The notes under the pieces: model-generated
Told to the model about the DNA's origin: nothing
Database searches by the model: none
The model's input: only the letters and a program-made list of their open reading frames with translations
Translations under genes and position numbers: made by a program
Part shown: positions 13,119 to 51,837 of the stretch, in pieces
Position numbering within the stretch: position 1 is the first letter of the stretch
How the letters are laid out: the number at the start of each line of letters is the position of its first letter
Sequence record: NC_047713.1
Length of the DNA stretch: 64,000 nt
Direction: 5' to 3' (one strand)

Positions 13119-13120
13119 AC

Positions 13121-13822
13121 ATGGCAGAACAAAATTGGGAAAGAAGAATACTCCAGAGTTTTGGTGCTAACTTTCGACTAGATGTTAGTAACCCACAGAA
13201 GACTGTTGGTGGTGAAGATGTATATAACTTCTACTCTGTTACAGATGAGGAGAAAGTATGTCTAATGGGACAACAACAGGATGGTCTCTGGCGCCTCTAC
13301 AATGATGATAAGGTAGAGATTGTAGGTGGTGCCAAAGTTGTTGAGGATGGTGTATGTGTAACTATTGTTGGTAAGAACGGTGATGTAGTTATTAACGCTG
13401 ACAACAATGGGAGGGTTAGAATCCGTGGGCAGAATATCAACCTCCAGGCAGATGAGGATGTTAATATCACTGCGGGTAGGAATGTTAATATCAAATCTGG
13501 TTCTGGTAGAACTCTCCTTGCGGGCAATACCCTGGAGAAAGACGCACTCAAAGGTAATCTATTAGACCCAGAGAAACAATGGGCATGGAGAGTATTTGAA
13601 GGAACTGGACTACCTGCTGGTATGTTCCCACAACTCATGTCACCCTTCAGTGGTATTACAGACCTAGCGGGATCTATTGTTGGTGGAGTTGGGTTCGGTG
13701 ATGCAATCAGTGGGGCTGTGAGTAGTGCAGTCAGTGGGGCAGTCAGTGGTGCTGTTGGTGGTGTCGCCGGTGGTGTCGCCGGTGATATTGCTGGTGACGC
13801 AATTGGTGGTATTATACCCTGA
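13121..13822 (+). CDS. gp5 C-terminal beta-helix-like spike protein (true start probably ATG 13121)
   Basis: VVINADNNGRVRIRGQNINLQADEDVNITAGRNVNIKSG beta-repeat; G/A/V-rich tail. Confidence 0.5.
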   Translation: MAEQNWERRILQSFGANFRLDVSNPQKTVGGEDVYNFYSVTDEEKVCLMGQQQDGLWRLYNDDKVEIVGGAKVVEDGVCVTIVGKNGDVVINADNNGRVRIRGQNINLQADEDVNITAGRNVNIKSGSGRTLLAGNTLEKDALKGNLLDPEKQWAWRVFEGTGLPAGMFPQLMSPFSGITDLAGSIVGGVGFGDAISGAVSSAVSGAVSGAVGGVAGGVAGDIAGDAIGGIIP

Positions 13823-22500: not shown

Positions 22501-25408
22501 ATTCACTGATATCCAATACAATCAACCTGTGGAAGATTTATATCCACAGATGGATCCTGATAACCTTATTCAGAACCCCCCTGCAACCACAACGTTTGCT
22601 AAGAGGGCACCCCTAGGTGATGTTACTATTGATGAACAACAGAACTCCATTACTAAAGAGTCTGTTGATAAAATATACAAGACACTTAATGTTGGTATCA
22701 TTGAGACTGCTACTGATGGCACTGTTGGTGCTGGTGGAACACGTACAACCACACTAACATTCCAAAGAGAGCACGAGTTCAACTCTGTGTATAGTTACAC
22801 CACACTAGTTGGTGGTGGTGGATATACTGATGGTACTTTCTATGATGTTAAACTACTCAGTGAGTTTGGCACAGTATGGGGAGGTGCTTCTGCTGTTGTT
22901 ACTGTTACTGCTGGTACAGTTACCGCAGTTACTATCATGGATCCTGGTTCAGGTTATTCTGCAGGTCAGACACTATTCATCGATGGAACTACAATTGGTG
23001 GTGGTACTAACGCTACTATTAGTATTACTCAGGCAGACTTAGAGGATAACAAGCATAGTATCCTACAGATTTCTGGTGGTGCTTTGTATAACCCAGATTC
23101 ATATGTAGTGATGACCAGTGTTGAGGATCAGTCTTCAGTTGGTGTTGCTAGAACTTCTGGAAGTCCTGCTATTATTCCTGGTATGTACGCATATCCAGCA
23201 GATAGTGGAACAGGTATTTCTTCAACTACATATAACTCCGATACAGGTTTAACAACACTAGTATCTACAGGTAGTGCTGGTTTTGGTCTTCAGAGGGGTA
23301 ACACTTTCGTTGTATTCAGTAGTAACTATAGCTATCTCGGTAAGTTCTTTGTATCTAATGTTCCAACTCCAGATACATTGGAGTTCTACTCATACCGAGA
23401 TCTAGGAACTGTATCTATTGTAGGTAAGACAGGTTTAGATGTAAATGATGCTAACACTGGTTCCTTAGGTGAGAACGTGGGTGTTAGAGCTACACCACTA
23501 TATGATAACGGTGTATTCTATCTTGAACAGTCTTCAGGTACTGGAACACAACTAACAGTTAGGGCTGAAGATGGTGGTGTGGCTGGTAATGTAGACTCTA
23601 AGATGTACCTAGGAAGATACTTCCAAATGGGTTCTGAGATTATCAGAGTTGCTAGTAAGAACTTTGATGGAGCCAATAACAATATCGTAACTGTTATCCG
23701 TGGTGCTCTTGGTACCGTTGTTAGCAACCTTCCCATTAATACTAAGGTGAAGGCAATCAGACCTTCCGCACTAGAACTTAGAAGACCTTCTATTCTACGT
23801 GCCTCAGGTCACACCTTTGAATATCTTGGTTATGGTCCTGGTAACTATTCCACTTCATTACCACAACTACAGGTTAAGCAACTCCCAGATGATGAAATTT
23901 ACCTAGTACAGGCTCAGGAACTATCCTGTGGTCAGGTTGTTTATACTGGTATGAGTGATAATGGTGACTTCTATATCGGTAATACCAAGTATTCCGCAAC
24001 CTCAGGAACACAATCAACCTTTGATGTTCCCATCCCAACTGTTGCTGGTCAACCAGGTAGTTCTAATAATGTTGTGTTTGATGAAGTTATCATCAACCGT
24101 CGTCTATTCGTATCTGGTGGTGAAACTAATGAGGTTCAGTCACAGTTTGATGGTCCTGTTAAGTTTACCCAGTCTGTTACTATTCAGAACAATCTTTTCG
24201 TAACTGGTACAACTCAACTCAATAGAATTGAGATCACCAGTACAGAGAACGCAACCAGTTCTGCTAATGGTGGAGCACTAACTATCAGAGGTGGTGCTGC
24301 TATTGGTAAAGACTTCTATGTTGGTGGTGAAATGTACACCAACGCATATCAAATAGAAGATACAAGTGCAGTTCTTGAAATTGGTACTAACCAGTCATCT
24401 AAGGATATCTCTGTTGGTGGTTCAACTGATACAGATAGAGTTGTTTTTAATACAACTAAACTAGCAACAGGTGAAGGTGCTGAAGAGGTAGTTAACGCAG
24501 ACGCTGGTGTTGTTGTTGAGGGTGGATTAGTTGTTCGTGATGTTATTATCGCGAAAGAGTTTAGAGGTGCTGGAACTGGTGGTGGTCCTGGTACTATCCT
24601 ACTCTGGGGTGGTTCTACTAGTGCTCTCCCTGACAGATATCTACTCTGCAACGGAGCTACTCTCAATAAAAACACATATAACAAACTATTCGAAGCCATT
24701 GGTTATATCCATGGTGGTAGTGGTAATAGTTTTAAGTTACCAGATTTGAGAAATAGGTTTATCCCTGGTGCTGGTAGTTCTTATGCGGTAGCTGCAAAAG
24801 GTGGGGATGATTCAGTTGTACTAACTGAAACGCAGATGCCACGCCACACGCACTCAACTTCAGCAGTCAACGCACCACATACTCACCCAGTATCGTTTAC
24901 TAGTGGAGCGGCAAATGCACCACATAAACACCCAGCTGGCACAGGTGGCGGTGGAAATCATAACCACCCATCAGGTGGCACAGGTGGTGGTGGTAATCAC
25001 AATCACCCATCAGGTGGCTCTAACAATACAGGCAACCATGGACACCCGTATAGTGCTCCGGGGCAATCCAAAACTGATGTTGCTAATTCTAACGAGAAGA
25101 ATGTAACTAGCAACGTCAATGCCTCAGGTGCAGGAACCGGTGGTGGTGGAGCACACTCCCACTCTGTTTCAGTTAACAGTACATCCTCAGCTCATAATCA
25201 CCCAGTAAGTGTCAACTCTGGATCTTCAGCTCATAATCACCCTGTTAGTGTTAATTCAGCTAATGCACCACATTCCCACCCAATTAGTGGTAATGCAGGT
25301 TCTGCAAACGCACCTCACGTTCACCCAATTGGTAATACTGGTGGTACTGCTTCCTTTGACAATAGACCCAAATACTACGCTCTCTGCTATATTATCCAAT
25401 CAGAGTGA
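19541..25408 (+). CDS. Large tail fibre/structural protein with tail-collar domain and His-rich needle
   Basis: 1955 aa; tail-collar motif GTILLWGG...YLLCNGA...FKLPDLRNRF; 11 HxH motifs near the C-terminus; CTAAATA at 19503. Confidence 0.85.
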   Translation: MPLNKLENFIKNTDGRTLYVNPNDLNATDSITNQGTSLTEPFRTIQRALIESARFSYVRGDDNDLIERTTIMVYPGEHPIDNRPGFGIKTVGNSPVAVTPSGELIDPFQAFNLTDASNFDIESSNNVLYRFNSIYGGVVVPRGTSIVGMDLRKTKIRPIYVPNPTDDSVDYSAIFRITGTCYFWQFTIFDGNENGVVFTDPRDFSENNQSRPTFSHHKLTAFEYADGVNPAVESGFELTDLAMYYSKLSNAYNEASGRPIDEKYPSDPGGFSPQRPEFEIVGAFATDPINITRLISGDGFVPDAVITVDTQVPHELNTGTPIKIRGVAISDYNISTKVSAVLSPTRFTYNLSFVRPNLPAEPSVSSATVTVETDTVTGASPYIFNCSMRSVWGINGMHADGAKATGFRSMVVAQFTAISLQKDDRSFVTYNKQARRYDGINVNKTVRGAELSAQSSSTNSATVYHLDPDAIYRPDWGTTHIKMSNDAVIQIVSVFAIGFNQHFASIGGADASITNSNSNFGQFALKADGFKNDAFLKDDKGFLTSFVSPKSAYNPETDDVEIIDWINIDFDLTRSIAFANQLYLTGYTNAEDKPPVVNQGFRIGANYKESLIQRTTVGAGADVTSSVRMCDNILGPGNNQATGSSVARKVYQVLAGPINNTLSLGVHGLLNGESVRVFSSTGDLPENLERGALYYANVVDGENIRIATSESNALNNIFLNIYGGVGLRVESRVNDKEAGERGHPVQYDYTNQNWFVHTDANSDIYQYIVANPTSTDGIDFVSIFKRLGDNRALEDKLYRLRYVIPKESRNAKPPTPGYVLQASATTGARNNDDFILQDIGINDYEYNRNPRYIVSCTVIANEVEVRSEIPHNLNVGDKIKIVNVASTNNTGASQIKGFNGEFLVTRVINSREFRYDITDVNGFSRNPGTFTNNINERNILLPRYERKDLQSNVFVYRIETITDFLEGERDGIYHLFLLNGSNPVTETFTDIQYNQPVEDLYPQMDPDNLIQNPPATTTFAKRAPLGDVTIDEQQNSITKESVDKIYKTLNVGIIETATDGTVGAGGTRTTTLTFQREHEFNSVYSYTTLVGGGGYTDGTFYDVKLLSEFGTVWGGASAVVTVTAGTVTAVTIMDPGSGYSAGQTLFIDGTTIGGGTNATISITQADLEDNKHSILQISGGALYNPDSYVVMTSVEDQSSVGVARTSGSPAIIPGMYAYPADSGTGISSTTYNSDTGLTTLVSTGSAGFGLQRGNTFVVFSSNYSYLGKFFVSNVPTPDTLEFYSYRDLGTVSIVGKTGLDVNDANTGSLGENVGVRATPLYDNGVFYLEQSSGTGTQLTVRAEDGGVAGNVDSKMYLGRYFQMGSEIIRVASKNFDGANNNIVTVIRGALGTVVSNLPINTKVKAIRPSALELRRPSILRASGHTFEYLGYGPGNYSTSLPQLQVKQLPDDEIYLVQAQELSCGQVVYTGMSDNGDFYIGNTKYSATSGTQSTFDVPIPTVAGQPGSSNNVVFDEVIINRRLFVSGGETNEVQSQFDGPVKFTQSVTIQNNLFVTGTTQLNRIEITSTENATSSANGGALTIRGGAAIGKDFYVGGEMYTNAYQIEDTSAVLEIGTNQSSKDISVGGSTDTDRVVFNTTKLATGEGAEEVVNADAGVVVEGGLVVRDVIIAKEFRGAGTGGGPGTILLWGGSTSALPDRYLLCNGATLNKNTYNKLFEAIGYIHGGSGNSFKLPDLRNRFIPGAGSSYAVAAKGGDDSVVLTETQMPRHTHSTSAVNAPHTHPVSFTSGAANAPHKHPAGTGGGGNHNHPSGGTGGGGNHNHPSGGSNNTGNHGHPYSAPGQSKTDVANSNEKNVTSNVNASGAGTGGGGAHSHSVSVNSTSSAHNHPVSVNSGSSAHNHPVSVNSANAPHSHPISGNAGSANAPHVHPIGNTGGTASFDNRPKYYALCYIIQSE

Positions 25409-38493: not shown

Positions 38494-38504
38494 TGTGTTA
38501 TAAT

Positions 38505-38529
38505 GGGGAGAGAAATCTCCCCTTTTTTT
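38505..38529 (+). terminator. Hairpin plus T-tract just before the HNH gene
   Basis: GGGGAGA-GAAA-TCTCCCC-T7. Confidence 0.65.
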
Positions 38530-38997
38530 ATGACAAGAGATTGGACTGGATATAAGAATGGAAAGCTCACTACTTTATATCAAGATGGAAGACATCCCAA
38601 AAGAAATGAAAGAATGTGGATGTGTGAGTGTGAATGTGGGAAAAGAAAGAGAGTTGCACAGAGTAAATTAAAGCAAACAAAATCTTGTGGTTGTAACAGA
38701 GGACCTAACAGCAATCCAAATGGGAATAACAATCACCCACTATACACAACTTGGTATGGAATGAAAACTAGATGCCTAAACCAGAATACCGGTAATTATA
38801 TGCGTTATGGTGGTAGGGGAATAACAATCTGTGAGGAGTGGAGAGATAACTTTCAGGCGTTTGTTGATTATGTTGGAGAGCGCCCAGAGGGACACACTTT
38901 GGATAGAATAAACAATGATGGTAACTACGAGCCAGGAAATGTTAGGTGGGCTACATCACAACAACAGGCACTAAACAGGCGTAACAACATTCACTAA
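38530..38997 (+). CDS. HNH homing endonuclease
   Basis: WMCECECG..SCGC; HPLYTTWYGMKTRC...YGGRGITIC..W...TLDRINNDGNYEPGNVRWAT. Confidence 0.9.
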   Translation: MTRDWTGYKNGKLTTLYQDGRHPKRNERMWMCECECGKRKRVAQSKLKQTKSCGCNRGPNSNPNGNNNHPLYTTWYGMKTRCLNQNTGNYMRYGGRGITICEEWRDNFQAFVDYVGERPEGHTLDRINNDGNYEPGNVRWATSQQQALNRRNNIH

Positions 38998-39025
38998 CAC
39001 ATTTTCCCTTATTTGACAAGCAGTG

Positions 39026-39173
39026 TTTTTCCATATTCTGGCAGGCTCACCCCTCCTACCACACCCAAAACACCCCCGATATGGTTTTTTACGAGTTTGG
39101 GTCTAGTGCCTGACTGGGTTCTCAGGGGCATCAAACCCCCATATCACCCTGATACCACCCCCCTACACAAAAC
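39026..39173. repeat. 148-bp non-coding repeat, copy A
   Basis: Gapless block-wise match to 48295-48442. Confidence 0.85.
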
Positions 39174-39183
39174 CACAAACCAT

Positions 39184-39290
39184 TGTGCCAGTTGGACTAG
39201 TGGCACAACCCCCCTAGGCAAGACCCCCCCCTATCGTGTATTGTATAGAAGTGGAGGGGAAACCCACCACACAAACCACTAACTAACCAA
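39184..39290 (+). promoter_or_regulatory. Early element copy 11 (long-leader class)
   Basis: tgtgccagt-tggact-agtggcaca; TAGGCA. Confidence 0.78.
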
Positions 39291-39473
39291 ATGAACCGCA
39301 TCCAACTCAACAAAGAACTCACACAACTTCGCGAAGAACGTGAAAAAGCACAACGTGAAGTTGATAACATCCAAGGATGTATGAATGAGTTAATGAGGAA
39401 GCGAAATGAGTTGGATATGGAACAGGAAGAACGTTCCGGTCAGATGTTATTTGACCAAATGTTTGGAGGTTGA
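39291..39473 (+). CDS. Small coiled-coil protein
   Basis: 60 aa, E/Q/R-rich heptads. Confidence 0.65.
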   Translation: MNRIQLNKELTQLREEREKAQREVDNIQGCMNELMRKRNELDMEQEERSGQMLFDQMFGG

Positions 39474-39502
39474 GTTAGTAACACAAACTATTCACTAAAA
39501 CA

Positions 39503-39748
39503 ATGAACACAACAACAATCAACATTCTCAAATCACTGGACATTCTTTCCACTTTGATTCAAGCATTCTATGAGATTGGATATGAACTTGGCACCTTCTA
39601 TCGCAACCATCTTCATTCACATGTAAAGTTTGCTATTGAATACTCTGGTCTTGTTATTCGTGAGACCTATGGTAACCGTCAAGAGTATTTCACAAAACTG
39701 AATAACCTTCGCAACCAAGCTGGTTCATACTTTGTCTATAGCGTGTGA
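39503..39748 (+). CDS. Hypothetical early protein
   Basis: 81 aa; TGA stop supplied by the next palindrome. Confidence 0.65.
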   Translation: MNTTTINILKSLDILSTLIQAFYEIGYELGTFYRNHLHSHVKFAIEYSGLVIRETYGNRQEYFTKLNNLRNQAGSYFVYSV

Positions 39749-39828
39749 CAGTTGAGGAAGTGGCACAAGCCCCCTAGGCAAACCCCTCAGGGGGTGCTAT
39801 ACTATATTCATACCAAAGGGAACCACCC
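39744..39828 (+). promoter_or_regulatory. Early element copy 12
   Basis: tgtgacagt-tgagga-agtggcaca; TAGGCA; TGC-TATACT. Confidence 0.9.
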
Positions 39829-40071
39829 ATGACTCACCTTTCTTTCACTCAAACCACACAAAACGCACTCCGTGAGTTGGATCGTTTAGAGGGAATAAAA
39901 GTTAGACTCGCTGGTCTGATTGTTGATCTTAAAGAGACACCATCAGCTAACTCTGAGACTTGGGTCAGGATGTATACTGACCGCCTCGTTTCTAATGTTA
40001 TCCCAGCCATCAAGGAAGTTAAAGAATATCTCACTAGTCAGGATGCACTAGTTACCAAAGCATCCAACTGA
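39829..40071 (+). CDS. Hypothetical early protein
   Basis: 80-aa single-gene cassette. Confidence 0.7.
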   Translation: MTHLSFTQTTQNALRELDRLEGIKVRLAGLIVDLKETPSANSETWVRMYTDRLVSNVIPAIKEVKEYLTSQDALVTKASN

Positions 40072-40148
40072 CAAACTGGCACAAGGGGGGTTGGCAAGAC
40101 CCCTCAAAACCCCTATACTAAACACATACCAAACAAAGGGAACAACCC
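40060..40148 (+). promoter_or_regulatory. Early element copy 13 (right arm only)
   Basis: actggcaca; GGGGGG-TTGGCA; TATACT. Confidence 0.8.
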
Positions 40149-40400
40149 ATGGCTCAACAAATCAAAATGAGAACACGAGTTTATTCTGATGTGACAGTAA
40201 GAGATCCACAGAGATATTATGATAGTGTGTTTCAGGGTTATAATGAGTATTGGACACTATTAGAATCAGATGATCCAAAGTGTATCTTAGTTGAGACTAC
40301 AGCACAATATGATCTAAACCCAGGGGGTTTGGATAACTTATATGATATGATTACACCTGAAATGTATCAGTCAACATACAGAACCTATATTGAAGTCTAA
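40149..40400 (+). CDS. Hypothetical early protein
   Basis: 83-aa single-gene cassette. Confidence 0.7.
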   Translation: MAQQIKMRTRVYSDVTVRDPQRYYDSVFQGYNEYWTLLESDDPKCILVETTAQYDLNPGGLDNLYDMITPEMYQSTYRTYIEV

Positions 40401-40402
40401 GA

Positions 40403-40485
40403 TGTGACAGTTGGGGAAGTGGCACACGCTTCCCCACAAACCACTCCATACCTGCTATACTAAACACATACCAAAGGAAACCAAC
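40403..40485 (+). promoter_or_regulatory. Early element copy 14
   Basis: tgtgacagt-tgggga-agtggcaca; GGGGAAGTG/CGCTTCCCC hairpin; TGC-TATACT. Confidence 0.88.
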
Positions 40486-40683
40486 ATGGTTATCGACACT
40501 GAAAACTATTTCACCACTGACAACGATCTTCTTCAGACAGTATCACAATTCATTCTCTCACTGAATAATAAATTGATCAGTCAGAATGCGAACTTTATGG
40601 AGTCTATTGGCGTTGATACTTTGACTGACTTCAACCAACAACTCATCCTTGAATGTGAAGAATACAAGTGTTATGATGTATAA
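40486..40683 (+). CDS. Hypothetical early protein
   Basis: ATG 40486 after AAGGA; the track start lies inside the element. Confidence 0.65.
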   Translation: MVIDTENYFTTDNDLLQTVSQFILSLNNKLISQNANFMESIGVDTLTDFNQQLILECEEYKCYDV

Positions 40684-40820
40684 TGAGATTACTTATTCTC
40701 TTCTTGTTTGTTACTGGGTTTCTAGTCCTTAGATTCGGAGTTGTCCCCCATGACAACTACGTATTCGATTGTGATAATATCCCACAAACAACAATCAACA
40801 CCATCGCCTGTGGTGGTTAA
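40683..40820 (+). CDS. Small membrane peptide (45 aa)
   Basis: MRLLILFLFVTGFLVLRFGVV..., TAATG-coupled. Confidence 0.5.
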   Translation: MRLLILFLFVTGFLVLRFGVVPHDNYVFDCDNIPQTTINTIACGG

Positions 40821-40843
40821 CACTCAACCTCAACTATTTCACC

Positions 40844-41353
40844 ATGACTGATACCAACAAGGCTCAAACAATTGAAGAGCTGAAAGCTGAAGTTTCTGAA
40901 CTGAAGGCAGCTAGGAAGGAAGAACTTCTGGCACAGGCAGAACAACGAAAGCAAGATGAGGAACTTCGTTCACTCGAACTTCAGAAACAAGCTCTAGAAA
41001 GTGGTTCCCTCCCCTCCCCCACAGGCACACCTCAGTCACTACAACGTAGGATGACTGATATTGAAAACGCACGAGTTCGCACCTGGGCATATGCACTAGG
41101 AGCCTATTTCACTGGTCCTATCATGCCAGCTGTGGTGGCTAATCGTACTAAGAACTGGACACCTTTCTGGGCTGGATTGGGTCTTGGCATTGTATCTCTC
41201 CCCCTAGCATTTGCTGACCTTGGTATCATCTCCTCTGTCCCTGCAGCTGCTTTAGGAACTGTACTTCAGGCTCAGAAATCTAACAAGAAGCGTGAGGAGT
41301 TGGGTATTGTTTCCCCTGAGGAAGCTGACCTTCTCCGTTTCAAACAGTTCTGA
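40844..41353 (+). CDS. Coiled-coil plus membrane protein
   Basis: N-terminal E/K/Q coiled coil; hydrophobic C-terminal helices. Confidence 0.7.
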   Translation: MTDTNKAQTIEELKAEVSELKAARKEELLAQAEQRKQDEELRSLELQKQALESGSLPSPTGTPQSLQRRMTDIENARVRTWAYALGAYFTGPIMPAVVANRTKNWTPFWAGLGLGIVSLPLAFADLGIISSVPAAALGTVLQAQKSNKKREELGIVSPEEADLLRFKQF

Positions 41354-41450
41354 TTAAGTTACATCTCTGACCTCCTCAGTTTATACTGACGACTAAACCA
41401 ACTGAGAGCGCTGGTCCCCTCTCACAACTCACCTTATCTAACTATCTACT

Positions 41451-41987
41451 ATGGCTATTTTCTCCGAAGAGTTCACCAACAGCATCAAGTCTAAAGTTGA
41501 TTCAGTGAAGGATAAATTCACAGGTATCAACATCGGGAAACAGAGTGTTGTTGCTATTGTGGGAGGTACGTTGGTATTCTCTACCCTCGCAGTTGGTGCA
41601 GTTGGTGCTACAGTTCGTCAGGTTGTTGGTTCTAACATGGCAAAACAATGTAATGTGGCTGTTGGTAACTATGTGGAGTTGGCTGAAGTTCAGGAAACCG
41701 AACTAGTGAGGGCTAATGGATATATTCAATCGGTTCTAGAAAACCCTTGGAGCGCCCTAGTCCTTGGTGCTAGGATGTCTGAGATGGCAGACGAGATGAG
41801 TGCTCGTTGGGATGAGATTGGTGAAGCTGATGATAACTATTTGGAGGCATGTGTTCCTGATAGTGACTTCAAACAATGGGTGTTTGGTGGATATGTTGAA
41901 GCCGATCGTGAAGCTAAGTGGGAAGCAGAATCTACCCTAGAAGATACTCGCCAAATCACAATCAAACTCTCTGAACAACTCGGATGA
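41451..41987 (+). CDS. Membrane-anchored helical protein
   Basis: TM segment VVAIVGGTLVFSTLAVGAVGA; acidic helical body. Confidence 0.7.
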   Translation: MAIFSEEFTNSIKSKVDSVKDKFTGINIGKQSVVAIVGGTLVFSTLAVGAVGATVRQVVGSNMAKQCNVAVGNYVELAEVQETELVRANGYIQSVLENPWSALVLGARMSEMADEMSARWDEIGEADDNYLEACVPDSDFKQWVFGGYVEADREAKWEAESTLEDTRQITIKLSEQLG

Positions 41988-42235
41988 ACAACCCTTTCGC
42001 CTCACTAACTACCGAAGAGTTTATCTCTCTATCTGATGCATGTGCTCTCTCTGAACAAATGTGGAGGGAGCGCTCCCGTTCTATAAAAGCAGGGGAGCCA
42101 CGTTGGTTTTTAGATGGCGAACCTATGTTCACTGAGGAGGAATGTCGCTCAGAAATGAAACGATATCGTGAGTTACAGAAACGAGTTTCCTGGTTCACCC
42201 TCACACCAGAGGAGAGGGAGGGTGTGCCAGTCTAA
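41984..42235 (+). CDS. Hypothetical protein
   Basis: ATGA-coupled; ends V-P-V in the next palindrome. Confidence 0.65.
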   Translation: MNNPFASLTTEEFISLSDACALSEQMWRERSRSIKAGEPRWFLDGEPMFTEEECRSEMKRYRELQKRVSWFTLTPEEREGVPV

Positions 42236-42304
42236 GAAGTGGCACAACCCCCCTAGACAAACCCCTCTTTTTCTGCTATACTATTCACATACAGACAAAA
42301 CACT
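42223..42304 (+). promoter_or_regulatory. Early element copy 15
   Basis: tgtgccagt-ctaaga-agtggcaca; TAGACA; TGC-TATACT. Confidence 0.88.
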
Positions 42305-43210
42305 ATGGCTAAGAATCTCCACCTAGAACACCCAGAAGACCAGCTCCTCACTGGTGACGATAGTGTCATCAGTTGGTTCTACGCAACCTCTAGTTCCTCT
42401 GTGAAGATGGATGGAGCTCCTGCTATTGTATGGGGAACTAACCCAGAAAATGGTGAGTTCTTTGTGGGAACTAAGTCAGTGTTTAATAAGAAGAAGATCA
42501 AGATATGTTATACCCAGAAAGATATTACAACCTTATATGGTCATCAACCTAATGTGGTTGCTATCCTTACCGCCTGTTTGGCATACCTCCCCCGCACTGA
42601 TGTAGTGTATCAGGGTGACTTTATTGGGTTTGGTGGTGATGATACCTATACCCCCAATACCGTCACCTATGTGTTCCCTGAGGTCATTCAGGAACGTGTT
42701 ATCATGGCACCCCACACTTTCTATGTGGGTGAGAAGATGACTGAGATGGATGCCTTCCCTATCTTATCCACTCTAGATGAATCACGTCACGTTCACTTTG
42801 TTCAACCTACCGTGGATATCTACAACAATAAGGCAAACTGGGAAGAGTTTCAGCGTTGTTATGATGAAGTGAAAGAGGTAGATGGTTTCCTAGGTATCAA
42901 GAGAGCCGCAGAGGCAAAGATCATCATCAACCAGTTACTCCGTAACAACAAGTATCTTAGTATTCCACTATTGACTGAGATCTTTGGTACTAAAGAGATG
43001 GCTATTCTGTACACCTTCGCACTACATGAGAAGTTCAGAATCCTTGAGGATGCTATCTACTACGATGGTCCCCAGTGTTTGTTAGATGGTGATGATGTAG
43101 AGGCTGAGGGTATTGTTAGAACCAACCAGTTTGGTTCTATGAAACTCGTCAATCGTTACATCTTCAGTGTAGCAAACTTCAACAACAGTAAGTTCAGAGA
43201 GGTGAAGTAA
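42305..43210 (+). CDS. Conserved phage protein with KxDG (ligase/nucleotidyltransferase motif I-like)
   Basis: MAKNLHLEHPED; SVKMDGAPAIVWG; YQGDF; EGIV; MKLVNR. Confidence 0.6.
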   Translation: MAKNLHLEHPEDQLLTGDDSVISWFYATSSSSVKMDGAPAIVWGTNPENGEFFVGTKSVFNKKKIKICYTQKDITTLYGHQPNVVAILTACLAYLPRTDVVYQGDFIGFGGDDTYTPNTVTYVFPEVIQERVIMAPHTFYVGEKMTEMDAFPILSTLDESRHVHFVQPTVDIYNNKANWEEFQRCYDEVKEVDGFLGIKRAAEAKIIINQLLRNNKYLSIPLLTEIFGTKEMAILYTFALHEKFRILEDAIYYDGPQCLLDGDDVEAEGIVRTNQFGSMKLVNRYIFSVANFNNSKFREVK

Positions 43211-43404
43211 TGGTTGACTTCGATACTCTAACCCACGAAGAACTAGAGAGACTATCTGATGACTGTGAGGACTTTCTTCTCCATAGAAATATACCTCTAA
43301 GGTCACATTCCTATGAGAATATCATCAGACATGCTATCTTGGAAGGATACCAACTATCTCGGTATCCTGGTGTGACACCTGGGAAACTGGCACAAGACCC
43401 CTAG
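43210..43404 (+). CDS. Hypothetical protein
   Basis: TAATG-coupled; reads through the next palindrome. Confidence 0.6.
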   Translation: MVDFDTLTHEELERLSDDCEDFLLHRNIPLRSHSYENIIRHAILEGYQLSRYPGVTPGKLAQDP

Positions 43405-43454
43405 ACAAACCAGACCACACCTGCTATACTATATTCATACCAAACAAACAACCC
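43371..43454 (+). promoter_or_regulatory. Early element copy 16
   Basis: tgtgacacc-tgggaa-actggcaca; TAGACA; TGC-TATACT. Confidence 0.85.
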
Positions 43455-43712
43455 ATGCAACTCACAGCACAACACGCAAACATCGTTGTTGATTTCTACC
43501 CTGTCAAGTACTCTGATGGCACTATCAGTGAGCGTCTAATGTATAAAACAGTGAAGTTCGTTGGTTCACCTGCATCTAAGTCATATATCAACAAAGAATC
43601 CTTTGAAAAGGAAGTTGATTCTCGTGTGTATGGTTTTGGTTATGAGGTAACTGATCTACATACAGAGCCACAACTCTTCAACTCTGCACTTGTTCAAACT
43701 CGCTGGTCATAA
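43455..43712 (+). CDS. Hypothetical early protein
   Basis: 85 aa after the element leader. Confidence 0.7.
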   Translation: MQLTAQHANIVVDFYPVKYSDGTISERLMYKTVKFVGSPASKSYINKESFEKEVDSRVYGFGYEVTDLHTEPQLFNSALVQTRWS

Positions 43713-43714
43713 GT

Positions 43715-43906
43715 ATGAATTACACACAACGGTTGTATGAGGCTGAACAACTCTCCACTATGTGTTACCTTTGTAATATTGACCTAACGGAATGTATTAC
43801 AGAGGTTTCTGATTACCTAGAGTTGGGTTATAATGACAGTAAAGATATTGCCTCAGGTACCTATAAAGTTCTCTCAACAATGAATCCCCATGAGCCTATC
43901 AAATGA
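43715..43906 (+). CDS. Hypothetical protein
   Basis: 63-aa ORF. Confidence 0.55.
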   Translation: MNYTQRLYEAEQLSTMCYLCNIDLTECITEVSDYLELGYNDSKDIASGTYKVLSTMNPHEPIK

Positions 43907-44249
43907 ATCAATGAGCAAGCTTGTCGATAACATTGCCTCTGATGTTTTCCATCTTATTGCTTCTGACCCATACTATACTGAGACCTTTATGAATCTATTA
44001 CCCGGTGCAATCACTGAGGTTATTGGTGATACTTCCCCTGAACTTATTGGTGAGTTGGGTGGTAGAATCATGGACAGAGTTGGGGTTGATGGATGTGATG
44101 TCAATTCCGATAAAGTATGGGAGGAGAGATATAGATCTCTGTTTCGTTATGTCAAAAACACATACGCATCAGAGTATGTTGATGGGGCAGAATATGGTCA
44201 GATGGGTACAATGTATGGAGATTTTACTAGTACCTCGGAGTTAGACTGA
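43890..44249 (+). CDS. Hypothetical protein (probable paralog of 46647-46871)
   Basis: LSNESMSKLVD...ASD...E..M.L pattern shared. Confidence 0.65.
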   Translation: MSLSNESMSKLVDNIASDVFHLIASDPYYTETFMNLLPGAITEVIGDTSPELIGELGGRIMDRVGVDGCDVNSDKVWEERYRSLFRYVKNTYASEYVDGAEYGQMGTMYGDFTSTSELD

Positions 44250-44452
44250 TGCCATCATTTACACCCTATGGTAGATACCAACTAACATCAGTTCAGGTAG
44301 ATTTGATCCTACACTGCATGAGTGAGTATAAAGGACTCACCACACAGGAAGATAACGAGAGGAGAAAGATTGTAGAAGAACTTAGCAACTCTTTTACTGA
44401 TACTGACCCATCAGATCCTTACCTAGATCATTACTATACTTGTGACTATTGA
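44249..44452 (+). CDS. Hypothetical protein
   Basis: TGATG-coupled 67-aa ORF. Confidence 0.55.
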   Translation: MPSFTPYGRYQLTSVQVDLILHCMSEYKGLTTQEDNERRKIVEELSNSFTDTDPSDPYLDHYYTCDY

Positions 44453-44826
44453 TGAATGAACTCTTTCCTTTTCCTGGTTTCCAGTATAGATTAGACTATA
44501 CAGATAACGGAACCCCAAAGCTATGTTGGTTTGAATGTGAGGATCATTTAGCCAAACATATATCTAGATACAAACTAACAAAGAAAACTCACAGGGCAAA
44601 GATCCAAACCCCCCGCGGGGTAAAGTTGGCGAAAGACCCGCTAGCCACCAAACCAGCCAGGAAACGGAAAACTACCCCCTCAAACCCCAGTGATACCAAG
44701 GGTTCTAAAGTATCAAAAACTACAAAATCCATAACGAAGGGCAAGAAGGTAGAAACACCCACCCCCTCCCGTAGGAAAGCGAAGAAATCAGTTTTTAGTA
44801 CCGTGGAGGACTTCTTTACCAAATGA
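44449..44826 (+). CDS. Hypothetical protein with basic disordered tail
   Basis: FPFPGFQYRLDY...CWFECEDHL; K/T/P-rich C-terminus. Confidence 0.65.
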   Translation: MMNELFPFPGFQYRLDYTDNGTPKLCWFECEDHLAKHISRYKLTKKTHRAKIQTPRGVKLAKDPLATKPARKRKTTPSNPSDTKGSKVSKTTKSITKGKKVETPTPSRRKAKKSVFSTVEDFFTK

Positions 44827-45014
44827 TTGTACCTAACGAATCAGAATTGCTTCACCTAAAGATACAAGCAGCAATGAGGGAGAATGCTTTTCCTCACAAT
44901 CAGTTGATGTATCTGGGTGAGAGAGAAGATCAACACTGGTATCTAATAGCAGGAAAACATGAAGTGCCAGTAACAATGTTAGAAGGATTTGAGAGGATTG
45001 ATGATGAAGAATGA
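44823..45014 (+). CDS. Hypothetical cyanophage protein
   Basis: ATGA-coupled; LMYLGERE..HWYLIAG.HEVPV. Confidence 0.65.
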   Translation: MIVPNESELLHLKIQAAMRENAFPHNQLMYLGEREDQHWYLIAGKHEVPVTMLEGFERIDDEE

Positions 45015-45152
45015 TAAACTAAAGACATATCACCTAAAGGTAAAGTTTATGGATGAACTAACCTATGGTCAGTTTATTACAGCACCCAGTGAAGAGGAAG
45101 CCATGAGACTTTTCATTGAGGAGTATATCTACATCGCATCGGAGAGAGACAC

Positions 45153-45344
45153 ATGAACCACAATAAGGTAGCAGAGGCTCTTCATGAAGAAGTAACTGAT
45201 TATATCTTTAAGAACCATTATCGCCATATCAAATCAGTTTATACTGATGTTGTTGAGGAATACATAGAGAGGGAAGTGGGTCCTCTAACTGAGAAGAACC
45301 ACAAACAACTAGTTAAACAACTCGTTAAATTCTACATCTCCTGA
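45153..45344 (+). CDS. Hypothetical protein
   Basis: 63-aa ORF. Confidence 0.55.
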   Translation: MNHNKVAEALHEEVTDYIFKNHYRHIKSVYTDVVEEYIEREVGPLTEKNHKQLVKQLVKFYIS

Positions 45345-45358
45345 TTGAGCTTTTCGTT

Positions 45359-45568
45359 ATGTCTTCACCATCAGCATTCACACCAGCATTAGGTCTAGAA
45401 GTTGAATACAGGGGCTTTGTGGGTTATATCAAGTTTATAGATGAAGAATATTTAACAGTGTGTGTGAAGAAGAAAGAGCACCAAATGTTTGGTGATGTTT
45501 GTATGGTTGTGTATCCAAGTCAGTGGGAACACATTAAACTAATGGGCGGACCTCACAGAGACCGCTAG
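45359..45568 (+). CDS. Hypothetical SH3-like small protein
   Basis: GLEVEYRGFVGYIKFIDEEYLTVCV beta pattern. Confidence 0.55.
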   Translation: MSSPSAFTPALGLEVEYRGFVGYIKFIDEEYLTVCVKKKEHQMFGDVCMVVYPSQWEHIKLMGGPHRDR

Positions 45569-45652
45569 GACAGTTGGAGAAGTGTCACAAGGGGGGTTCG
45601 CAACCCTCCTTTTCTATGCTATACTATATTCATACCAAAGGGAACCACCCCC
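45566..45652 (+). promoter_or_regulatory. Early element copy 17
   Basis: taggacagt-tggaga-agtgtcaca; TTCGCA; TGC-TATACT. Confidence 0.82.
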
Positions 45653-45799
45653 ATGACTATCAACCTCAAAAGTCTATTCATCACCACTTGTGTGGGTCTC
45701 ACCCTAATACTAGGGAGCTTCGCTTTTACCAGTGATTATGGTACTGAGACCGGGCGTGGCGAACAGACTGAGAGCCCTTACTACGGACCCGCTTTCTAA
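45653..45799 (+). CDS. Small membrane/exported peptide (48 aa)
   Basis: MTINLKSLFITTCVGLTLILGSFAF..., a cassette between two elements. Confidence 0.65.
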   Translation: MTINLKSLFITTCVGLTLILGSFAFTSDYGTETGRGEQTESPYYGPAF

Positions 45800-45867
45800 A
45801 GTGGCACAAGGGGGGTTGGCAAGACCCTCTACACCTGCTATACTAAACACATACCAAACAAGGAACC
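45785..45867 (+). promoter_or_regulatory. Early element copy 18 (right arm only)
   Basis: agtggcaca; GGGGGG-TTGGCA; TGC-TATACT. Confidence 0.8.
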
Positions 45868-46044
45868 ATGTTTAAACTTCAACTCAAATGGCAGAAAGAA
45901 GGTGAGTGGATTGATACAGTATACGCTCCTACAGAATACGCAACAGCTTTCTTTCGTTGGAGACAGTACCAAGAGCTTTGGGGTGATACTCACACCTATC
46001 GCCTCCTCGATGTGACACCTCAGGAAGTGGCACAAGCCTCCTAG
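45868..46044 (+). CDS. Small hypothetical protein (58 aa)
   Basis: MFKLQLKWQKEGEWIDTVY..., a cassette between two elements. Confidence 0.65.
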   Translation: MFKLQLKWQKEGEWIDTVYAPTEYATAFFRWRQYQELWGDTHTYRLLDVTPQEVAQAS

Positions 46045-46093
46045 GCAAACCACCCCACACCTGCTATACTAAACACATACCAAACAAAGAACC
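46011..46093 (+). promoter_or_regulatory. Early element copy 19
   Basis: tgtgacacc-tcagga-agtggcaca; TAGGCA; TGC-TATACT. Confidence 0.87.
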
Positions 46094-46375
46094 ATGAATT
46101 TCAAGTCCTTCCTTCTCTCCTCTCTCATCGTTACCACTGGGCTAGTAGCTTCAGCACCAGGAGCCAAAGCCGCTGAATGTTTCAATGGTGATGGATATCG
46201 GGTTTGTATGGAGAGCTTAGGCATGAATCGTTGGGAAGTATCCTTCGAGAACAACCATGGCTCAGAGTTTATGGAGGTTCAGTGTATTGGCAAGAGTGTG
46301 AGTGATTGGACCTCACGGGGTGATTTGAGTCAGTCTGAAGCACAGTATCTCGCAGAGGAATTCTGTTCCTGGTAA
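46094..46375 (+). CDS. Exported Cys-containing protein
   Basis: MNFKSFLLSSLIVTTGLVASAPGAKA signal peptide; four Cys. Confidence 0.72.
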   Translation: MNFKSFLLSSLIVTTGLVASAPGAKAAECFNGDGYRVCMESLGMNRWEVSFENNHGSEFMEVQCIGKSVSDWTSRGDLSQSEAQYLAEEFCSW

Positions 46376-46408
46376 GATACAACAACTAACCAACTCTACA
46401 CTATTATC

Positions 46409-46567
46409 ATGTTTGTATCCTTCACTGAAATCCAAGACTACATTCGCGAAGACCAATACACATATAGTGAGCGTCAGTTCCGCTCACGCAAATACAACAA
46501 AAACGAACGTCGTTATCAGCGTCGTCAGAAGCAACAACAAAGAGAACGCAACTACGATAGCGTGTGA
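46409..46567 (+). CDS. Small R/Q-rich protein (52 aa)
   Basis: MFVSFTEIQDYIRE...; TGA in the next palindrome. Confidence 0.6.
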   Translation: MFVSFTEIQDYIREDQYTYSERQFRSRKYNKNERRYQRRQKQQQRERNYDSV

Positions 46568-46646
46568 CAGTTGGAGAAGTGGCACACGCTTCTCCACAAA
46601 CCCCTCAGGGGGTGCTATACTATATTCATACCAAAGGGAACCACCC
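46563..46646 (+). promoter_or_regulatory. Early element copy 20
   Basis: tgtgacagt-tggaga-agtggcaca; GGAGAAGTG/CGCTTCTCC hairpin; TGC-TATACT. Confidence 0.9.
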
Positions 46647-46871
46647 ATGACCACCACCACTCCAAACCTCTACAACGAAGCTATCCGTCGTTTGGCTGAC
46701 GGGTTCTCCTCAGAGTTCGCTGAGTTCTGTGCAGGAGACGAGAGGGTTCACGAGATCATGATGGAACTCGCTAGTGAGTTCGTAGAAACCAATATCCCTG
46801 TAGTGAGTGAGGACAGCCAGACTGACGTGGCATCTGAGCTCCTCATGAGTATCACAGTCACCAAGGTGTGA
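46647..46871 (+). CDS. Hypothetical early protein
   Basis: ATG 46647 after the element; the track's longer ORF spans the element and is an artefact. Confidence 0.7.
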   Translation: MTTTTPNLYNEAIRRLADGFSSEFAEFCAGDERVHEIMMELASEFVETNIPVVSEDSQTDVASELLMSITVTKV

Positions 46872-46951
46872 CAGTCTAGGAACTGGCACAAGGGGGGTTG
46901 GCAACACCCCCCAAAACCTCTATACTAAACACATACCAAACAACCCAGACC
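46867..46951 (+). promoter_or_regulatory. Early element copy 21
   Basis: tgtgacagt-ctagga-actggcaca; TTGGCA; TATACT. Confidence 0.88.
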
Positions 46952-47500
46952 ATGAACTTCAAGAAACTCCTCCTTTCCACTCTCGCACTTGGTTCAGTTG
47001 TAGCCCCTTCAGCAAACGCTGGTTATACCTATGAGGGTTATCACTTGATGGATGGTTCTGACTTTCCTGGTTATGAGAGAGTGGCAACCCCAATGATTCA
47101 GGCTCTCAATGAAATGGGTGTTCCTGTTGTTGATGGTGGTAAGAATAACGTAGAAATGTGTATTCCTGAAGAGGAAAAGATGACTCTTGGTTTCTACGTT
47201 CCAGCATCCAATGTGATGGTTATCTGCACCAAGTCTATCCCAGGTTGGCTCCAGATGGAGACACTTACCCACGAAACAGTTCATGTCATCCAAGACGCAA
47301 GAGCTGGTATTGATAACGGAGATTTGGGAGAGGCACCAACCGATCACCTTATCACCCTCGCTAATGAGATGGATCCCGATAAGATGAATATCATCTACAG
47401 CCTCTACGATGAGTCTGATTACGCAGTAGAGATTGAAGCTTTCTACTTTGAAACAGAACCCCAGGCGGTTATGAATGAGATCCAGAAGTGGGCATTCTGA
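46952..47500 (+). CDS. Exported zinc-metallopeptidase-like protein (HEXXH)
   Basis: MNFKKLLLSTLALGSVVAPSANA signal peptide; LTHETVHVIQD; downstream EIEA. Confidence 0.7.
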   Translation: MNFKKLLLSTLALGSVVAPSANAGYTYEGYHLMDGSDFPGYERVATPMIQALNEMGVPVVDGGKNNVEMCIPEEEKMTLGFYVPASNVMVICTKSIPGWLQMETLTHETVHVIQDARAGIDNGDLGEAPTDHLITLANEMDPDKMNIIYSLYDESDYAVEIEAFYFETEPQAVMNEIQKWAF

Positions 47501-47542
47501 TACACTAAGTAACACTCACCAAACACACTAACTAACAACATC

Positions 47543-47929
47543 ATGGGCACACGTTCACGCATCGGTTATCAACTTCCAACTGGCAATATCGTTTCTGTGT
47601 ATCATCATTGGGATTCATATCCTACGTGGTTGGGTAAGAGACTCACCAAAAACTACATCACTGATAAAACCATCACCGAACTGATTGATGGTGGTGATAT
47701 GTCATCTATCGAGAGTAATCGCGACTGGGATCTTAATGAAGTTGCCCCACATGTTCAGTATTATTCACAACGTGGTGACACTGGATGTGAACCCCTCCTT
47801 CACAAAAACCAAAGAGAGTTTATCAAAACCACTGTAGACTGTTGGGGTGAGTATTCCTACTTATACAGGAATGGACGTTGGTTCTGTTATGATGAGAAGG
47901 GTAAGTCTGTTTCACTGAAGAACTTATGA
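47543..47929 (+). CDS. Conserved phage hypothetical protein
   Basis: MGTRSRIG...SVYHHWDSYP..LG..L, a widespread phage family pattern. Confidence 0.75.
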   Translation: MGTRSRIGYQLPTGNIVSVYHHWDSYPTWLGKRLTKNYITDKTITELIDGGDMSSIESNRDWDLNEVAPHVQYYSQRGDTGCEPLLHKNQREFIKTTVDCWGEYSYLYRNGRWFCYDEKGKSVSLKNL

Positions 47930-48294
47930 TTAGCAAACTGTTTTCACTATCTCTTGTTCTTGCGGGTTCTATCTTACCCGCACATGCATACCCCAATATC
48001 GTATATTGGGAACGCATTGATTGTAACCTCATCACCGAAACTATCCAGAAGTGTGATAGGTACAATGGGCAGAATGGAGTTTTCATCGAATCATACTACC
48101 TGGACATATACACAAACGAACATAGCTTTATAGATCCACGCGAACCGGAAATAGTTGTACCTGATGTTATTGAAGAAGAACTCTATATTGTTGAACCTGT
48201 GTTAGAAGATGAGACACTAGATGATATTCAACCAGATGTAGAATACAACCAACCGATAACAACATCAGACCCACTCCTGAATGATAGTTACTGA
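47926..48294 (+). CDS. Exported protein with acidic tail
   Basis: MISKLFSLSLVLAGSILPAHA signal peptide; Cys pair. Confidence 0.65.
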   Translation: MISKLFSLSLVLAGSILPAHAYPNIVYWERIDCNLITETIQKCDRYNGQNGVFIESYYLDIYTNEHSFIDPREPEIVVPDVIEEELYIVEPVLEDETLDDIQPDVEYNQPITTSDPLLNDSY

Positions 48295-48442
48295 TTTTTC
48301 CATATTCCTGTCGGCAACCACCTCCTACCATACCCCCTGCCAAACCGATATGGATTTTTCACCTTTCCCGTCTAGTGGCTCACTGGTATCTCAGCGAGGC
48401 ACAAATGAGATTTCACCCCCATACCACCCCTCTGACCAAAAC
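48295..48442. repeat. 148-bp non-coding repeat, copy B
   Basis: Gapless block-wise match to 39026-39173. Confidence 0.85.
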
Positions 48443-48447
48443 GGATC

Positions 48448-48759
48448 ATGAAACGCTACGGACTTTATTGGCTGAGAGCTATCACCCTAGGTGCTGGGCT
48501 AAACTTTGTTCTGACTGGTTATCTCATGGGTCACCAAAAGTGGAAGTTTCAACATGCAGCTCCACTCTCAGCGTTTATCTGTGTGAATCTATCGTATGTG
48601 GCGGATCGTCTTATCTTTGGTGATAAGAAGGAACCTGAAGATTTAGATCCAGATACTATTGTTATATCAACCCCACACTGTTGCCCCGTATGTTCAGAGT
48701 ATCCTTGCACTTGTGACAGTTGGGAAAGTGGCACAAGTCCCCTAGGCAACACCCTCTGA
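48448..48759 (+). CDS. Hypothetical two-TM protein with Cys-rich tail
   Basis: Two hydrophobic segments; CCPVC..YPCTC; reads into the next element. Confidence 0.55.
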   Translation: MKRYGLYWLRAITLGAGLNFVLTGYLMGHQKWKFQHAAPLSAFICVNLSYVADRLIFGDKKEPEDLDPDTIVISTPHCCPVCSEYPCTCDSWESGTSPLGNTL

Positions 48760-50622: not shown

Positions 50623-50886
50623 ATGTTCCAAGTCTGTATTGAAGATTCACTAGATCACCGTCATACAGTTGATGAGTTTGAGACTCTGGAAGAAGCACAA
50701 GAGTGTTATAACGAGTGTTTGAAGATTGGTCCTGAGGGTTATGAACTCTCTGTTGAGTTAGAGCAAGTTATTGGCGACCATGATGATTATATTTCAATTG
50801 ATTTCACCGAGTGGTTTACACAAGAGGAGTGGGATGTGGCTCATCCATGGAATGAGAAGGAAGGAGTATGGGAAAACATAGACTGA
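50623..50886 (+). CDS. Hypothetical acidic early protein
   Basis: 87-aa single-gene cassette. Confidence 0.7.
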   Translation: MFQVCIEDSLDHRHTVDEFETLEEAQECYNECLKIGPEGYELSVELEQVIGDHDDYISIDFTEWFTQEEWDVAHPWNEKEGVWENID

Positions 50887-50970
50887 TGTGACAGTTGGAG
50901 AAGTGGCACACGCTTCTCCGCAAGACCCGCCTCACCTGCTATACTATATTCATACCAAAGGGAACCACCC
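50887..50970 (+). promoter_or_regulatory. Early element copy 26
   Basis: tgtgacagt-tggaga-agtggcaca; GGAGAAGTG/CGCTTCTCC hairpin; TGC-TATACT. Confidence 0.9.
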
Positions 50971-51261
50971 ATGACCACCAACACCCTCATCAGACTCGGC
51001 ACTCTCGGTTTTGGGGCTTTCGCAATGACGGTTAACCTGGCACCCATGAGCACTCCGGTCGTTCCTCTCCTTTCCCAACTTACTCCAGTTTACGCTGAGG
51101 TCACTCAGTTTGACAACAGCCAATACAAGTTTGTTTCTCATCAGGAGTTTGTTTTCATGAATAAAACAAGAGAGAACGCACTAGAAGAAATTGATAAAAT
51201 TGTGGAAGACTTTGAGCGTGAGATCGATGAAGCTTTCTCACCAGACAACTTTCGTTTCTGA
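50971..51261 (+). CDS. Hypothetical protein, copy 1
   Basis: 96 aa with a hydrophobic N-terminus. Confidence 0.65.
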   Translation: MTTNTLIRLGTLGFGAFAMTVNLAPMSTPVVPLLSQLTPVYAEVTQFDNSQYKFVSHQEFVFMNKTRENALEEIDKIVEDFEREIDEAFSPDNFRF

Positions 51262-51356: not shown

Positions 51357-51611
51357 ATGACCACCACCCAAACCAAAACCGAGTTCCTCACCGAGGCAAT
51401 GATCGAACAGGTGAACAACCTCTGGAAGGTTTATAACGTGGAGTCAGGTCACACCATCACCCCACTCCTTAAGTATGAAGTGGCTAAGAAGTATATCAAG
51501 GTCTATCGTCTTGATGTTGTCAATGGTGAGATTAAGGGAACCACCCATGACCACCAACACCCTCATCAGACTCGGCACTCTCGGTTTTGGGGCTTTCGCA
51601 ATGACGGTTAA
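51357..51611 (+). pseudogene. Truncated/chimeric copy of 51933-52274
   Basis: Identical up to ...VNGEI, then switches at the duplication junction to KGTTHDH... Confidence 0.8.
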
Positions 51612-51837
51612 CCTGGCACCCATGAGCACTCCGGTCGTTCCTCTCCTTTCCCAACTTACTCCAGTTTACGCTGAGGTCACTCAGTTTGACAACAGCCAAT
51701 ACAAGTTTGTTTCTCATCAGGAGTTTGTTTTCATGAATAAAACAAGAGAGAACGCACTAGAAGAAATTGATAAAATTGTGGAAGACTTTGAGCGTGAGAT
51801 CGATGAAGCTTTCTCACCAGACAACTTTCGTTTCTGA
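51547..51837 (+). CDS. Hypothetical protein, copy 2
   Basis: Exact duplicate of 50971-51261. Confidence 0.6.
   Translation: MTTNTLIRLGTLGFGAFAMTVNLAPMSTPVVPLLSQLTPVYAEVTQFDNSQYKFVSHQEFVFMNKTRENALEEIDKIVEDFEREIDEAFSPDNFRF

Follow-up and report, generated by a model that had tools for sequence, protein, structure and literature searches.

A duplicated intergenic element in the early region of phage ACG-2014f

The window analysed here is the whole 64,000-nucleotide (nt) stretch formed by positions 1-64000 of the genome of Synechococcus phage ACG-2014f_Syn7803C8 (KJ019058.1; 223,270 base pairs, bp), a T4-like cyanomyovirus of the genus Atlauavirus (Kyanoviridae) that infects marine Synechococcus. 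In its early region, where small genes of unassigned function form a dense array, all on the + strand, we studied an intergenic element of 148 nt that occurs twice. The two gaps that hold it are the longest of the region (293 and 153 nt, all others being 97 nt or shorter), and it sits after the stop codon of the preceding gene and before the palindrome-plus-promoter cassette of the following unit. The element is real, non-coding, constrained and previously undescribed; full-text literature searches found no mention of it. The two copies are:

39026-39173, + strand: copy A, 148 nt, inside the longest intergenic gap (38998-39290)
48295-48442, + strand: copy B, 148 nt, between gene 88 (stop at 48294) and gene 89 (ATG at 48448)

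The copies align without a gap and are identical at 99 of 148 positions (blastn, E = 5e-7). When copy A was slid over the whole window, the mean was 36.6 identities (standard deviation 5.4) and the second-best placement gave 60. Matches and mismatches fall into only 41 runs, and since none of 20,000 permutations gave as few, the block-and-linker pattern is real. The coordinates, the gap-free alignment and the offset of each block proposed in the original prediction all proved correct on re-alignment, and CCATAT and ATATGG are indeed inverted. The strict spacing claimed for the blocks holds over offsets 53-131, where no indels were found among the 17 variants described below, but the 5' half lacks 1 nt in some copy-A variants, and in one the C-run is longer by one C. 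The element contains 36% C and 14-16% G, and examination of the repeats in the window revealed no internal repeat family that covers it.

Conserved blocks are under selective constraint

For the analysis of constraint, eight copy-A and nine copy-B variants were aligned, a small and closely related sample. Where the consensus sequences of the two copies agree, 61 columns are invariant and 32 are polymorphic within the paralogues; where they disagree, only 8 are invariant and 48 are polymorphic (Fisher p = 5e-10). The 3' half alone gives p = 4e-8. The strictly invariant core consists of TTTT..CAT, ATATGG.TTTTT, GTCTAGTG.CT.ACTGG..TCTCAG.G, CAC.C..ATAC and AAAC. Thus, the block-wise constraint expected from the original prediction is borne out: the columns shared between the copies are mostly invariant within each paralogue, which, at the level of sequence comparison, indicates that the blocks are under purifying selection. 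The window isolate (C8) and a metagenome contig (L020) agree at about 80% of the positions of the element, a level close to that of the flanking open reading frames (ORFs).

The element is predicted to fold into two hairpin domains and a tail

Read as + strand RNA, both copies are predicted to contain two hairpins followed by a C-rich, unstructured tail:

39031-39084, + strand: copy A, domain 1; CCAUAUU (39031-39037) pairs with GAUAUGG (39078-39084)
39085-39090, + strand: T6 run straight after the copy-A domain 1 stem, of which TTTTT is invariant
39099-39138, + strand: copy A, domain 2; helices GGGU/ACCC, GUGCCU/GGGCAU and CUGG/UCAG, holding the invariant GTCTAGTG.CT.ACTGG..TCTCAG
39139-39173, + strand: copy A, tail; C-rich and G-poor, with conserved CAC.C..ATAC and AAAC
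48299-48354, + strand: copy B, domain 1; UCCAUAUU (48299-48306) pairs with GAUAUGGA (48347-48354), with an inner GGCA/UGCC helix
48355-48359, + strand: T5 run after copy-B domain 1
48366-48410, + strand: copy B, domain 2; three-segment hairpin with two 1x1 internal loops, apex CUGG/UCAG as in copy A
48411-48442, + strand: copy B, tail; C-rich, continuing straight into the start of gene 89 in the window isolate

In the predicted fold, a long hairpin spans offsets 4-60, with (U)CCAUAU(U)/(G)AUAUGG(A) as its closing helix. A run of five or six U residues begins at the end of the stem or 1 nt later, and TTTTT at offsets 60-64 is invariant in 17 of 17 variants. The folding energy of domain 1 ranges from -7.1 to -26.7 kcal/mol, with the copy A of the window as the weakest, and in all variants it is lower than that of shuffled sequences (z from -1.6 to -6.3). 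The closing helix has 121 canonical cells out of 170, against 38-67 with slid partners; a C-to-U change retains its pair as G.U, and in one metagenome variant (L021) the helix reaches 10 bp. Domain 1 thus has two features of an intrinsic terminator, a stable hairpin and a U-rich tract directly 3' of the stem.

The interior of domain 1 differs in nearly every lineage. In copy A it is weak in the window isolate and a strong hairpin in isolates without the HNH endonuclease gene described below, where the inner hairpin is followed by UUUUUU or UUCUUU. This anatomy would explain the pattern of the 5' half, as the conserved blocks correspond to the stem base and the U-run, and the scrambled linker to the hairpin interior. 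We also considered the interior as a unique hypervariable hotspot, an idea that was rejected because it is only one of several low-identity patches in a mosaic region.

Offsets 71-115 are predicted to form a three-segment hairpin of about 45 nt in both paralogues. Its apex CUGG/UCAG is invariant while the loop is variable, and its outer helix has G-C in copy A but C-G in copy B at alignment columns 81/119, within linkers that had been called scrambled. The support from covariation is thin and comprises this single G-C to C-G swap. Between the two hairpins, the fold leaves a short, invariant, U-rich single strand. The structured-RNA reading offered in the original prediction is therefore compatible with the modelled fold, two hairpin domains with a U-run after the first.

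The element does not behave as a gene and matches no known family

Two ORFs run across the copies, and both were rejected as genes:

39013-39282, + strand: TTG-started ORF of 89 codons across copy A and the adjoining promoter cassette
48281-48451, + strand: ATG-started ORF of 56 codons across copy B

The claim that neither copy has a good start codon needs correction for copy B, which carries the second of these ORFs, although this ORF is not conserved: it has a premature stop in metagenome contig L020 and stops in every copy A. One reading frame is open over offsets 53-131 in all 17 variants. Its possible starts are an ATG in most copy-A variants (ATGCCGATATGG), a far-upstream TTG in the copy A of the window, and none in copy B. 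In this frame the variable columns are distributed 15/9/9 over codon positions 1/2/3, so that position 1 is the most variable, and the mismatches between copies A and B are distributed 19/14/16. Codons with synonymous-only and amino-acid-changing variation number 0 and 7 in copy A and 2 and 11 in copy B. Between isolates there are single-base indels that shift the frame, located in the 5' half, the C-run and further downstream. Codon-type conservation with a real start, which would have spoken for a gene, was thus looked for, and neither a shared start nor a synonymous excess was found. No match to the ORFs of the element was obtained in Pfam or PHROG. The non-coding nature of the element is confirmed by the starts, the codon-position pattern, the indels and the lack of family matches, and a small gene was rejected on the same grounds together with the stop codons.

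Known RNA families gave no better account. Rfam 15 has no match in the window, with only noise around copy A at E <= 10 and nothing in four variant loci at E <= 5, and ARAGORN found no transfer RNA or transfer-messenger RNA gene in the window. Neither copy contains an internal sigma-70 promoter on either strand, as judged by a promoter scan and by inspection. A template/variable repeat pair of a diversity-generating retroelement was rejected, as only 14 of the 49 mismatches involve an A in either copy and no reverse transcriptase is annotated in the genome. An iteron array or replication origin was rejected on the lack of an internal repeat family and the C-rich composition. The proposal of an origin or packaging site finds no support either: there are no iterons, no repeated binding motif recurs among the blocks, the copies number only two, and they lie in a gene-dense early region coded on a single strand.

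The element is specific to one lineage

By blastn, the element was found only in about 45 ACG-2014f records, at two places in nearly every record. A search of the whole 223-kb genome by nhmmer with a 17-variant profile and the filters off (--max) returned exactly two copies. A metagenome scan gave five marine contigs, all of them copy-B orthologues. Four pattern scans of IMG/VR gave only one ACG-2014f genome and chance matches, and no match was found in 185,579 bacterial and archaeal genomes (one representative per species). The sequence comparison across phages and viromes that had been proposed as a check does return homologues, but only in ACG-2014f and the five metagenome contigs, and because of this distribution we regard the element as specific to one lineage.

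The nearest other species with a homologue of gene 89 is S-CAM7 (59% amino-acid identity), whose syntenic region has no intergenic space at this place and no element in 28 kb. Four contigs with gene 89 homologues were examined; three of them (86%, 76% and 70% identity) are without the element, and the fourth (85% identity) begins inside the copy-B tail.

One IMG/VR contig (L006, IMGVR_UViG_3300031853_004370) carries, within the region 13033-13427, 26 of 27 bases of the copy-B tail (TCACCCCCATACCACCCCTCT.ACCAA). The match adjoins a field of iteron-like repeats, TTGTTGATAA / GGGTTTCAAC, in an otherwise unrelated contig. It is probably a coincidence, as nothing else of the element is present there.

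Promoter cassettes and gene traffic beside the copies

The other gaps of the region are filled by a cassette that consists of a palindrome (TGTGACA-N10-TGGCACA), a -35 box (TAGGCA or TTGGCA), 17 nt, a -10 box (TATACT) and a C/A-rich leader that extends to the next ATG. A profile built on 25 cassettes of the window finds about 28 copies over 27564-55147 (e.g., 39742-39837, 46561-46659 and 50883-50982). The same profile gives no match on the element, and the idea that the element is a degenerate promoter cassette was rejected. In some cassettes the -35 box lies in the loop of a GGGGG...CCCCC hairpin, which is followed by T6. Two features adjoin copy A:

38496-38997, + strand: HNH endonuclease cassette, with an extended -10-like box (TGTTATAAT), a hairpin (GGGGAGAgaaaTCTCCCC) followed by T7 (38505-38529) and the ORF (38530-38997)
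39182-39266, + strand: palindrome (39184-39207, TGTGCCA-N10-TGGCACA) and weak sigma-70-like promoter cassette before gene 61, adjoining the element and outside its 148 nt

Both copies had been described as lacking the early palindrome. This does not hold for copy A, as the palindrome TGTGCCAGTTGGACTAGTGGCACA starts 10 nt past the element. In many sister isolates the same palindrome is also found 3' of copy B, at a near-equal spacing (a 1-nt indel).

Only 6 of about 45 records have the HNH cassette, which directly abuts the 5' edge of copy A. These records have a different version of the first 50 nt of copy A, and identity resumes at CCGATATGG. The HNH protein is not recognised by Pfam at E <= 0.1. 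The extended -10-like box is followed by the strong hairpin and the T7 run, which end right at the ATG of the HNH ORF, a sequence arrangement that suggests tightly limited expression. At the other locus, the space between copy B and gene 89 holds in many isolates a palindrome, a promoter and an additional gene of 357 nt (L007:1364-1810, KJ019037; equivalents in L008-L010 and L018), all of which are absent from the window isolate and from four metagenome contigs. Hence, both loci adjoin gene gain or loss between close relatives, the HNH gene 5' of copy A and the extra gene 3' of copy B. A role of the element in recombination, which had been put forward, is weakly suggested by these cassettes; however, the whole region is mosaic, and for this reason breakpoints near the element are not exceptional.

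Some further features of this genome were recorded. Two 300-nt stretches of the window (50958-51257 and 51534-51833) are 100% identical and 576 nt apart, as if a gene and its cassette had recently been duplicated in tandem. Over positions 14000-16000, GGT-rich repeats with a 9-nt period form long arrays, as would fit a collagen-like structural protein of the Gly-X-Y type. Outside the window (L023:6530-9546 and 23139-23831, with L022:38685-39023), the annotation of the gp43 DNA polymerase is split into two ORFs, separated by two tiny ones, and the L023 and L022 regions also hold an rpoD-like gene of the sigma-70 family and a LAGLIDADG endonuclease gene beside the head vertex gene.

Likeness to known phage systems

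Promoter-early stem-loop (PeSL) cassettes have been described for T4-type phages (PMC2839356, PMC4122927), and judging by their sequence the palindrome-plus-promoter cassettes of the window resemble them. The element shares with PeSLs a repeated, intergenic regulatory sequence in a plastic T4-like early region, a stem-loop or terminator, and gene gain or loss between relatives; among the features that define PeSLs, its position at an indel boundary agrees. It differs from them in having no internal promoter and two copies instead of many, in its greater length and in the lack of a match to the cassette profile. Its second hairpin and tail have no PeSL counterpart, and it sits upstream of two of the PeSL-like cassettes in the window.

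An intrinsic terminator is like domain 1 in its stable hairpin and run of five or six U residues, with conserved stem base and U-run and a free interior. Domain 1, in contrast, spans 54-56 nt, is branched, has an A-U-rich base and is preceded by a second conserved T-run 5' of the stem. Such a terminator also leaves domain 2 and the tail unexplained.

Hairpins at which phage early messenger RNAs are processed, such as those of T7 for RNase III and the sites of RNase E, are likewise irregular structures with internal loops, placed between the cistrons of an early polycistronic transcript, and the U-rich strand predicted between the two hairpins of the element would fit such a site. In the put RNAs of phage HK022, two specific stem-loops bind RNA polymerase and keep downstream terminators from acting. 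In outline, putL and putR resemble the element in having two diverged copies per genome, with two hairpins each, that act in cis in early operons, but the U-run that follows domain 1 would argue for the opposite effect. The HNH gene beside copy A in a minority of isolates and the altered flanking tract are reminiscent of the free-standing homing endonuclease loci of T-even phages, but copy B has no endonuclease, and the element is present in all isolates with or without the HNH gene.

A possible module for termination or processing between early units

As the most economical reading we propose, with a probability of about 0.4, that the element is an intercistronic RNA module for termination or processing between early units. 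For this model we infer its transcription, termination and processing, as well as any protein partner. The element would be transcribed within the early + strand gene array, between the stop of one unit and the cassette of the next. The hairpin of domain 1 with its U-run would present to host RNA polymerase coming from upstream the anatomy of an intrinsic terminator or attenuator, and the module could terminate or pause a part of the read-through and in this way insulate neighbouring early units. The U-rich single strand flanked by two hairpins is a candidate processing site, and a protective hairpin would stay on the processed products. Induction of the host RNase E has been described for cyanophage infection (PMC3113571, PMC9692554), which makes a role in processing plausible.

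Several observations weigh against this proposal. A consensus terminator scan did not call domain 1, because its loop and stem are outside the limits of the scan. Folded as a whole, the two copies of the window are no better than shuffled sequences (z of +0.59 for copy A and -1.29 for copy B), and only two metagenome variants are clearly structured (-3.0 and -3.7). Copies A and B do not share one register in the middle helix of domain 2. Chimeras in which the 5' and 3' hairpin halves were exchanged between variants match the natives in stability (-16.8 vs -17.1 kcal/mol for domain 1 and -13.1 vs -13.8 kcal/mol for domain 2). Co-evolution of the arms was rejected on this test, and the pairing may be no more than a consequence of generic G-rich and C-rich arms. 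As all 17 variants are close kin, they contain few independent changes. Moreover, long invariant runs in the helices and the tail, and runs of up to 8 bases within a 25-nt block, exceed what pairing needs and suggest sequence-specific recognition of RNA or of DNA.

Such recognition could mean that the element works as DNA, either as a fixed-spacing array of protein sites upstream of an early promoter cassette or as a homology patch or target for cassette exchange and homing-endonuclease traffic. We consider this possible but doubtful. The over-long invariant blocks and the indel-free stretch at offsets 53-131 would fit it, as would the HNH cassette at the 5' edge of copy A with its altered domain 1 interior, which is consistent with a co-conversion tract ending at CCGATATGG. 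The extra gene with its own cassette, present or absent directly 3' of copy B, and the homology of copy A to a C58-type copy B, which extends through the palindrome, point in the same direction. However, the blocks have no repeated or dyad motif in common, there is no binding protein to name, about 28 promoter cassettes do without the element, of which there are two copies only, and the breakpoints near it are unexceptional in a region that is mosaic throughout. A functionless leftover of an old intergenic duplication, with blocks that arose by chance or by patchy gene conversion, would suit the very narrow distribution, the mosaic surroundings and the absence of a detectable family. It seems unlikely, given that both paralogues and the divergent metagenome variants have their invariant columns in common, that mismatches cluster far beyond chance and that the level of conservation is about that of the flanking ORFs (identity of about 0.8 between C8 and L020); nor would conversion tracts of 9-25 nt be expected at identical places in every lineage.

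At the RNA level, the element might instead be a cis-acting regulatory RNA with a specific partner, for example a polymerase-modifying RNA similar to HK022 put or an operator hairpin for a phage RNA-binding protein. Two copies per genome in early units with two hairpins each, the invariant apex and internal-loop sequences (GUCUAGUG, CUGG/UCAG, and CUA opposite AA) and the RegA encoded in the genome agree with this idea. It remains quite improbable in our view, because Rfam gives no match even at permissive thresholds, the covariation is weak and the U-run after domain 1 favours termination over anti-termination. The more specific version, a lineage-specific RNA that, with a partner of its own (host RNA polymerase, RNase E or a phage RNA-binding protein), would weigh termination against read-through at two places in the early programme, is likewise a long shot. 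Very improbable indeed is a small protein-coding gene or its decaying remnant, read in the open frame FPYS...PIW.F... or in the ATG ORF at 48281-48451. The stop-free frame, the ATG at ATGCCGATATGG and the coupling-like overlap of the copy-B ORF with both neighbours speak for it; against it stand the lack of a start conserved across the copies, the most variable first codon position, the nearly complete excess of amino-acid-changing codons, the frame-shifting indels, the stops in a metagenome variant and in every copy A, and the absence of family matches.

The early regions of T4-like cyanophages are crowded with tiny genes of unknown function, and the separation of their transcription units is poorly known. 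The very narrow distribution of the element limits its wider impact, unless relatives turn up. If the insulation or processing model is true, a conserved non-coding module of this kind would offer a handle on early-gene regulation in an abundant group of marine phages. If a dedicated partner is involved, the element would represent a new RNA family in T4-like cyanophages and not a generic terminator. Such a module could also help to explain the traffic of gene cassettes and homing endonucleases through the early regions of these phages.

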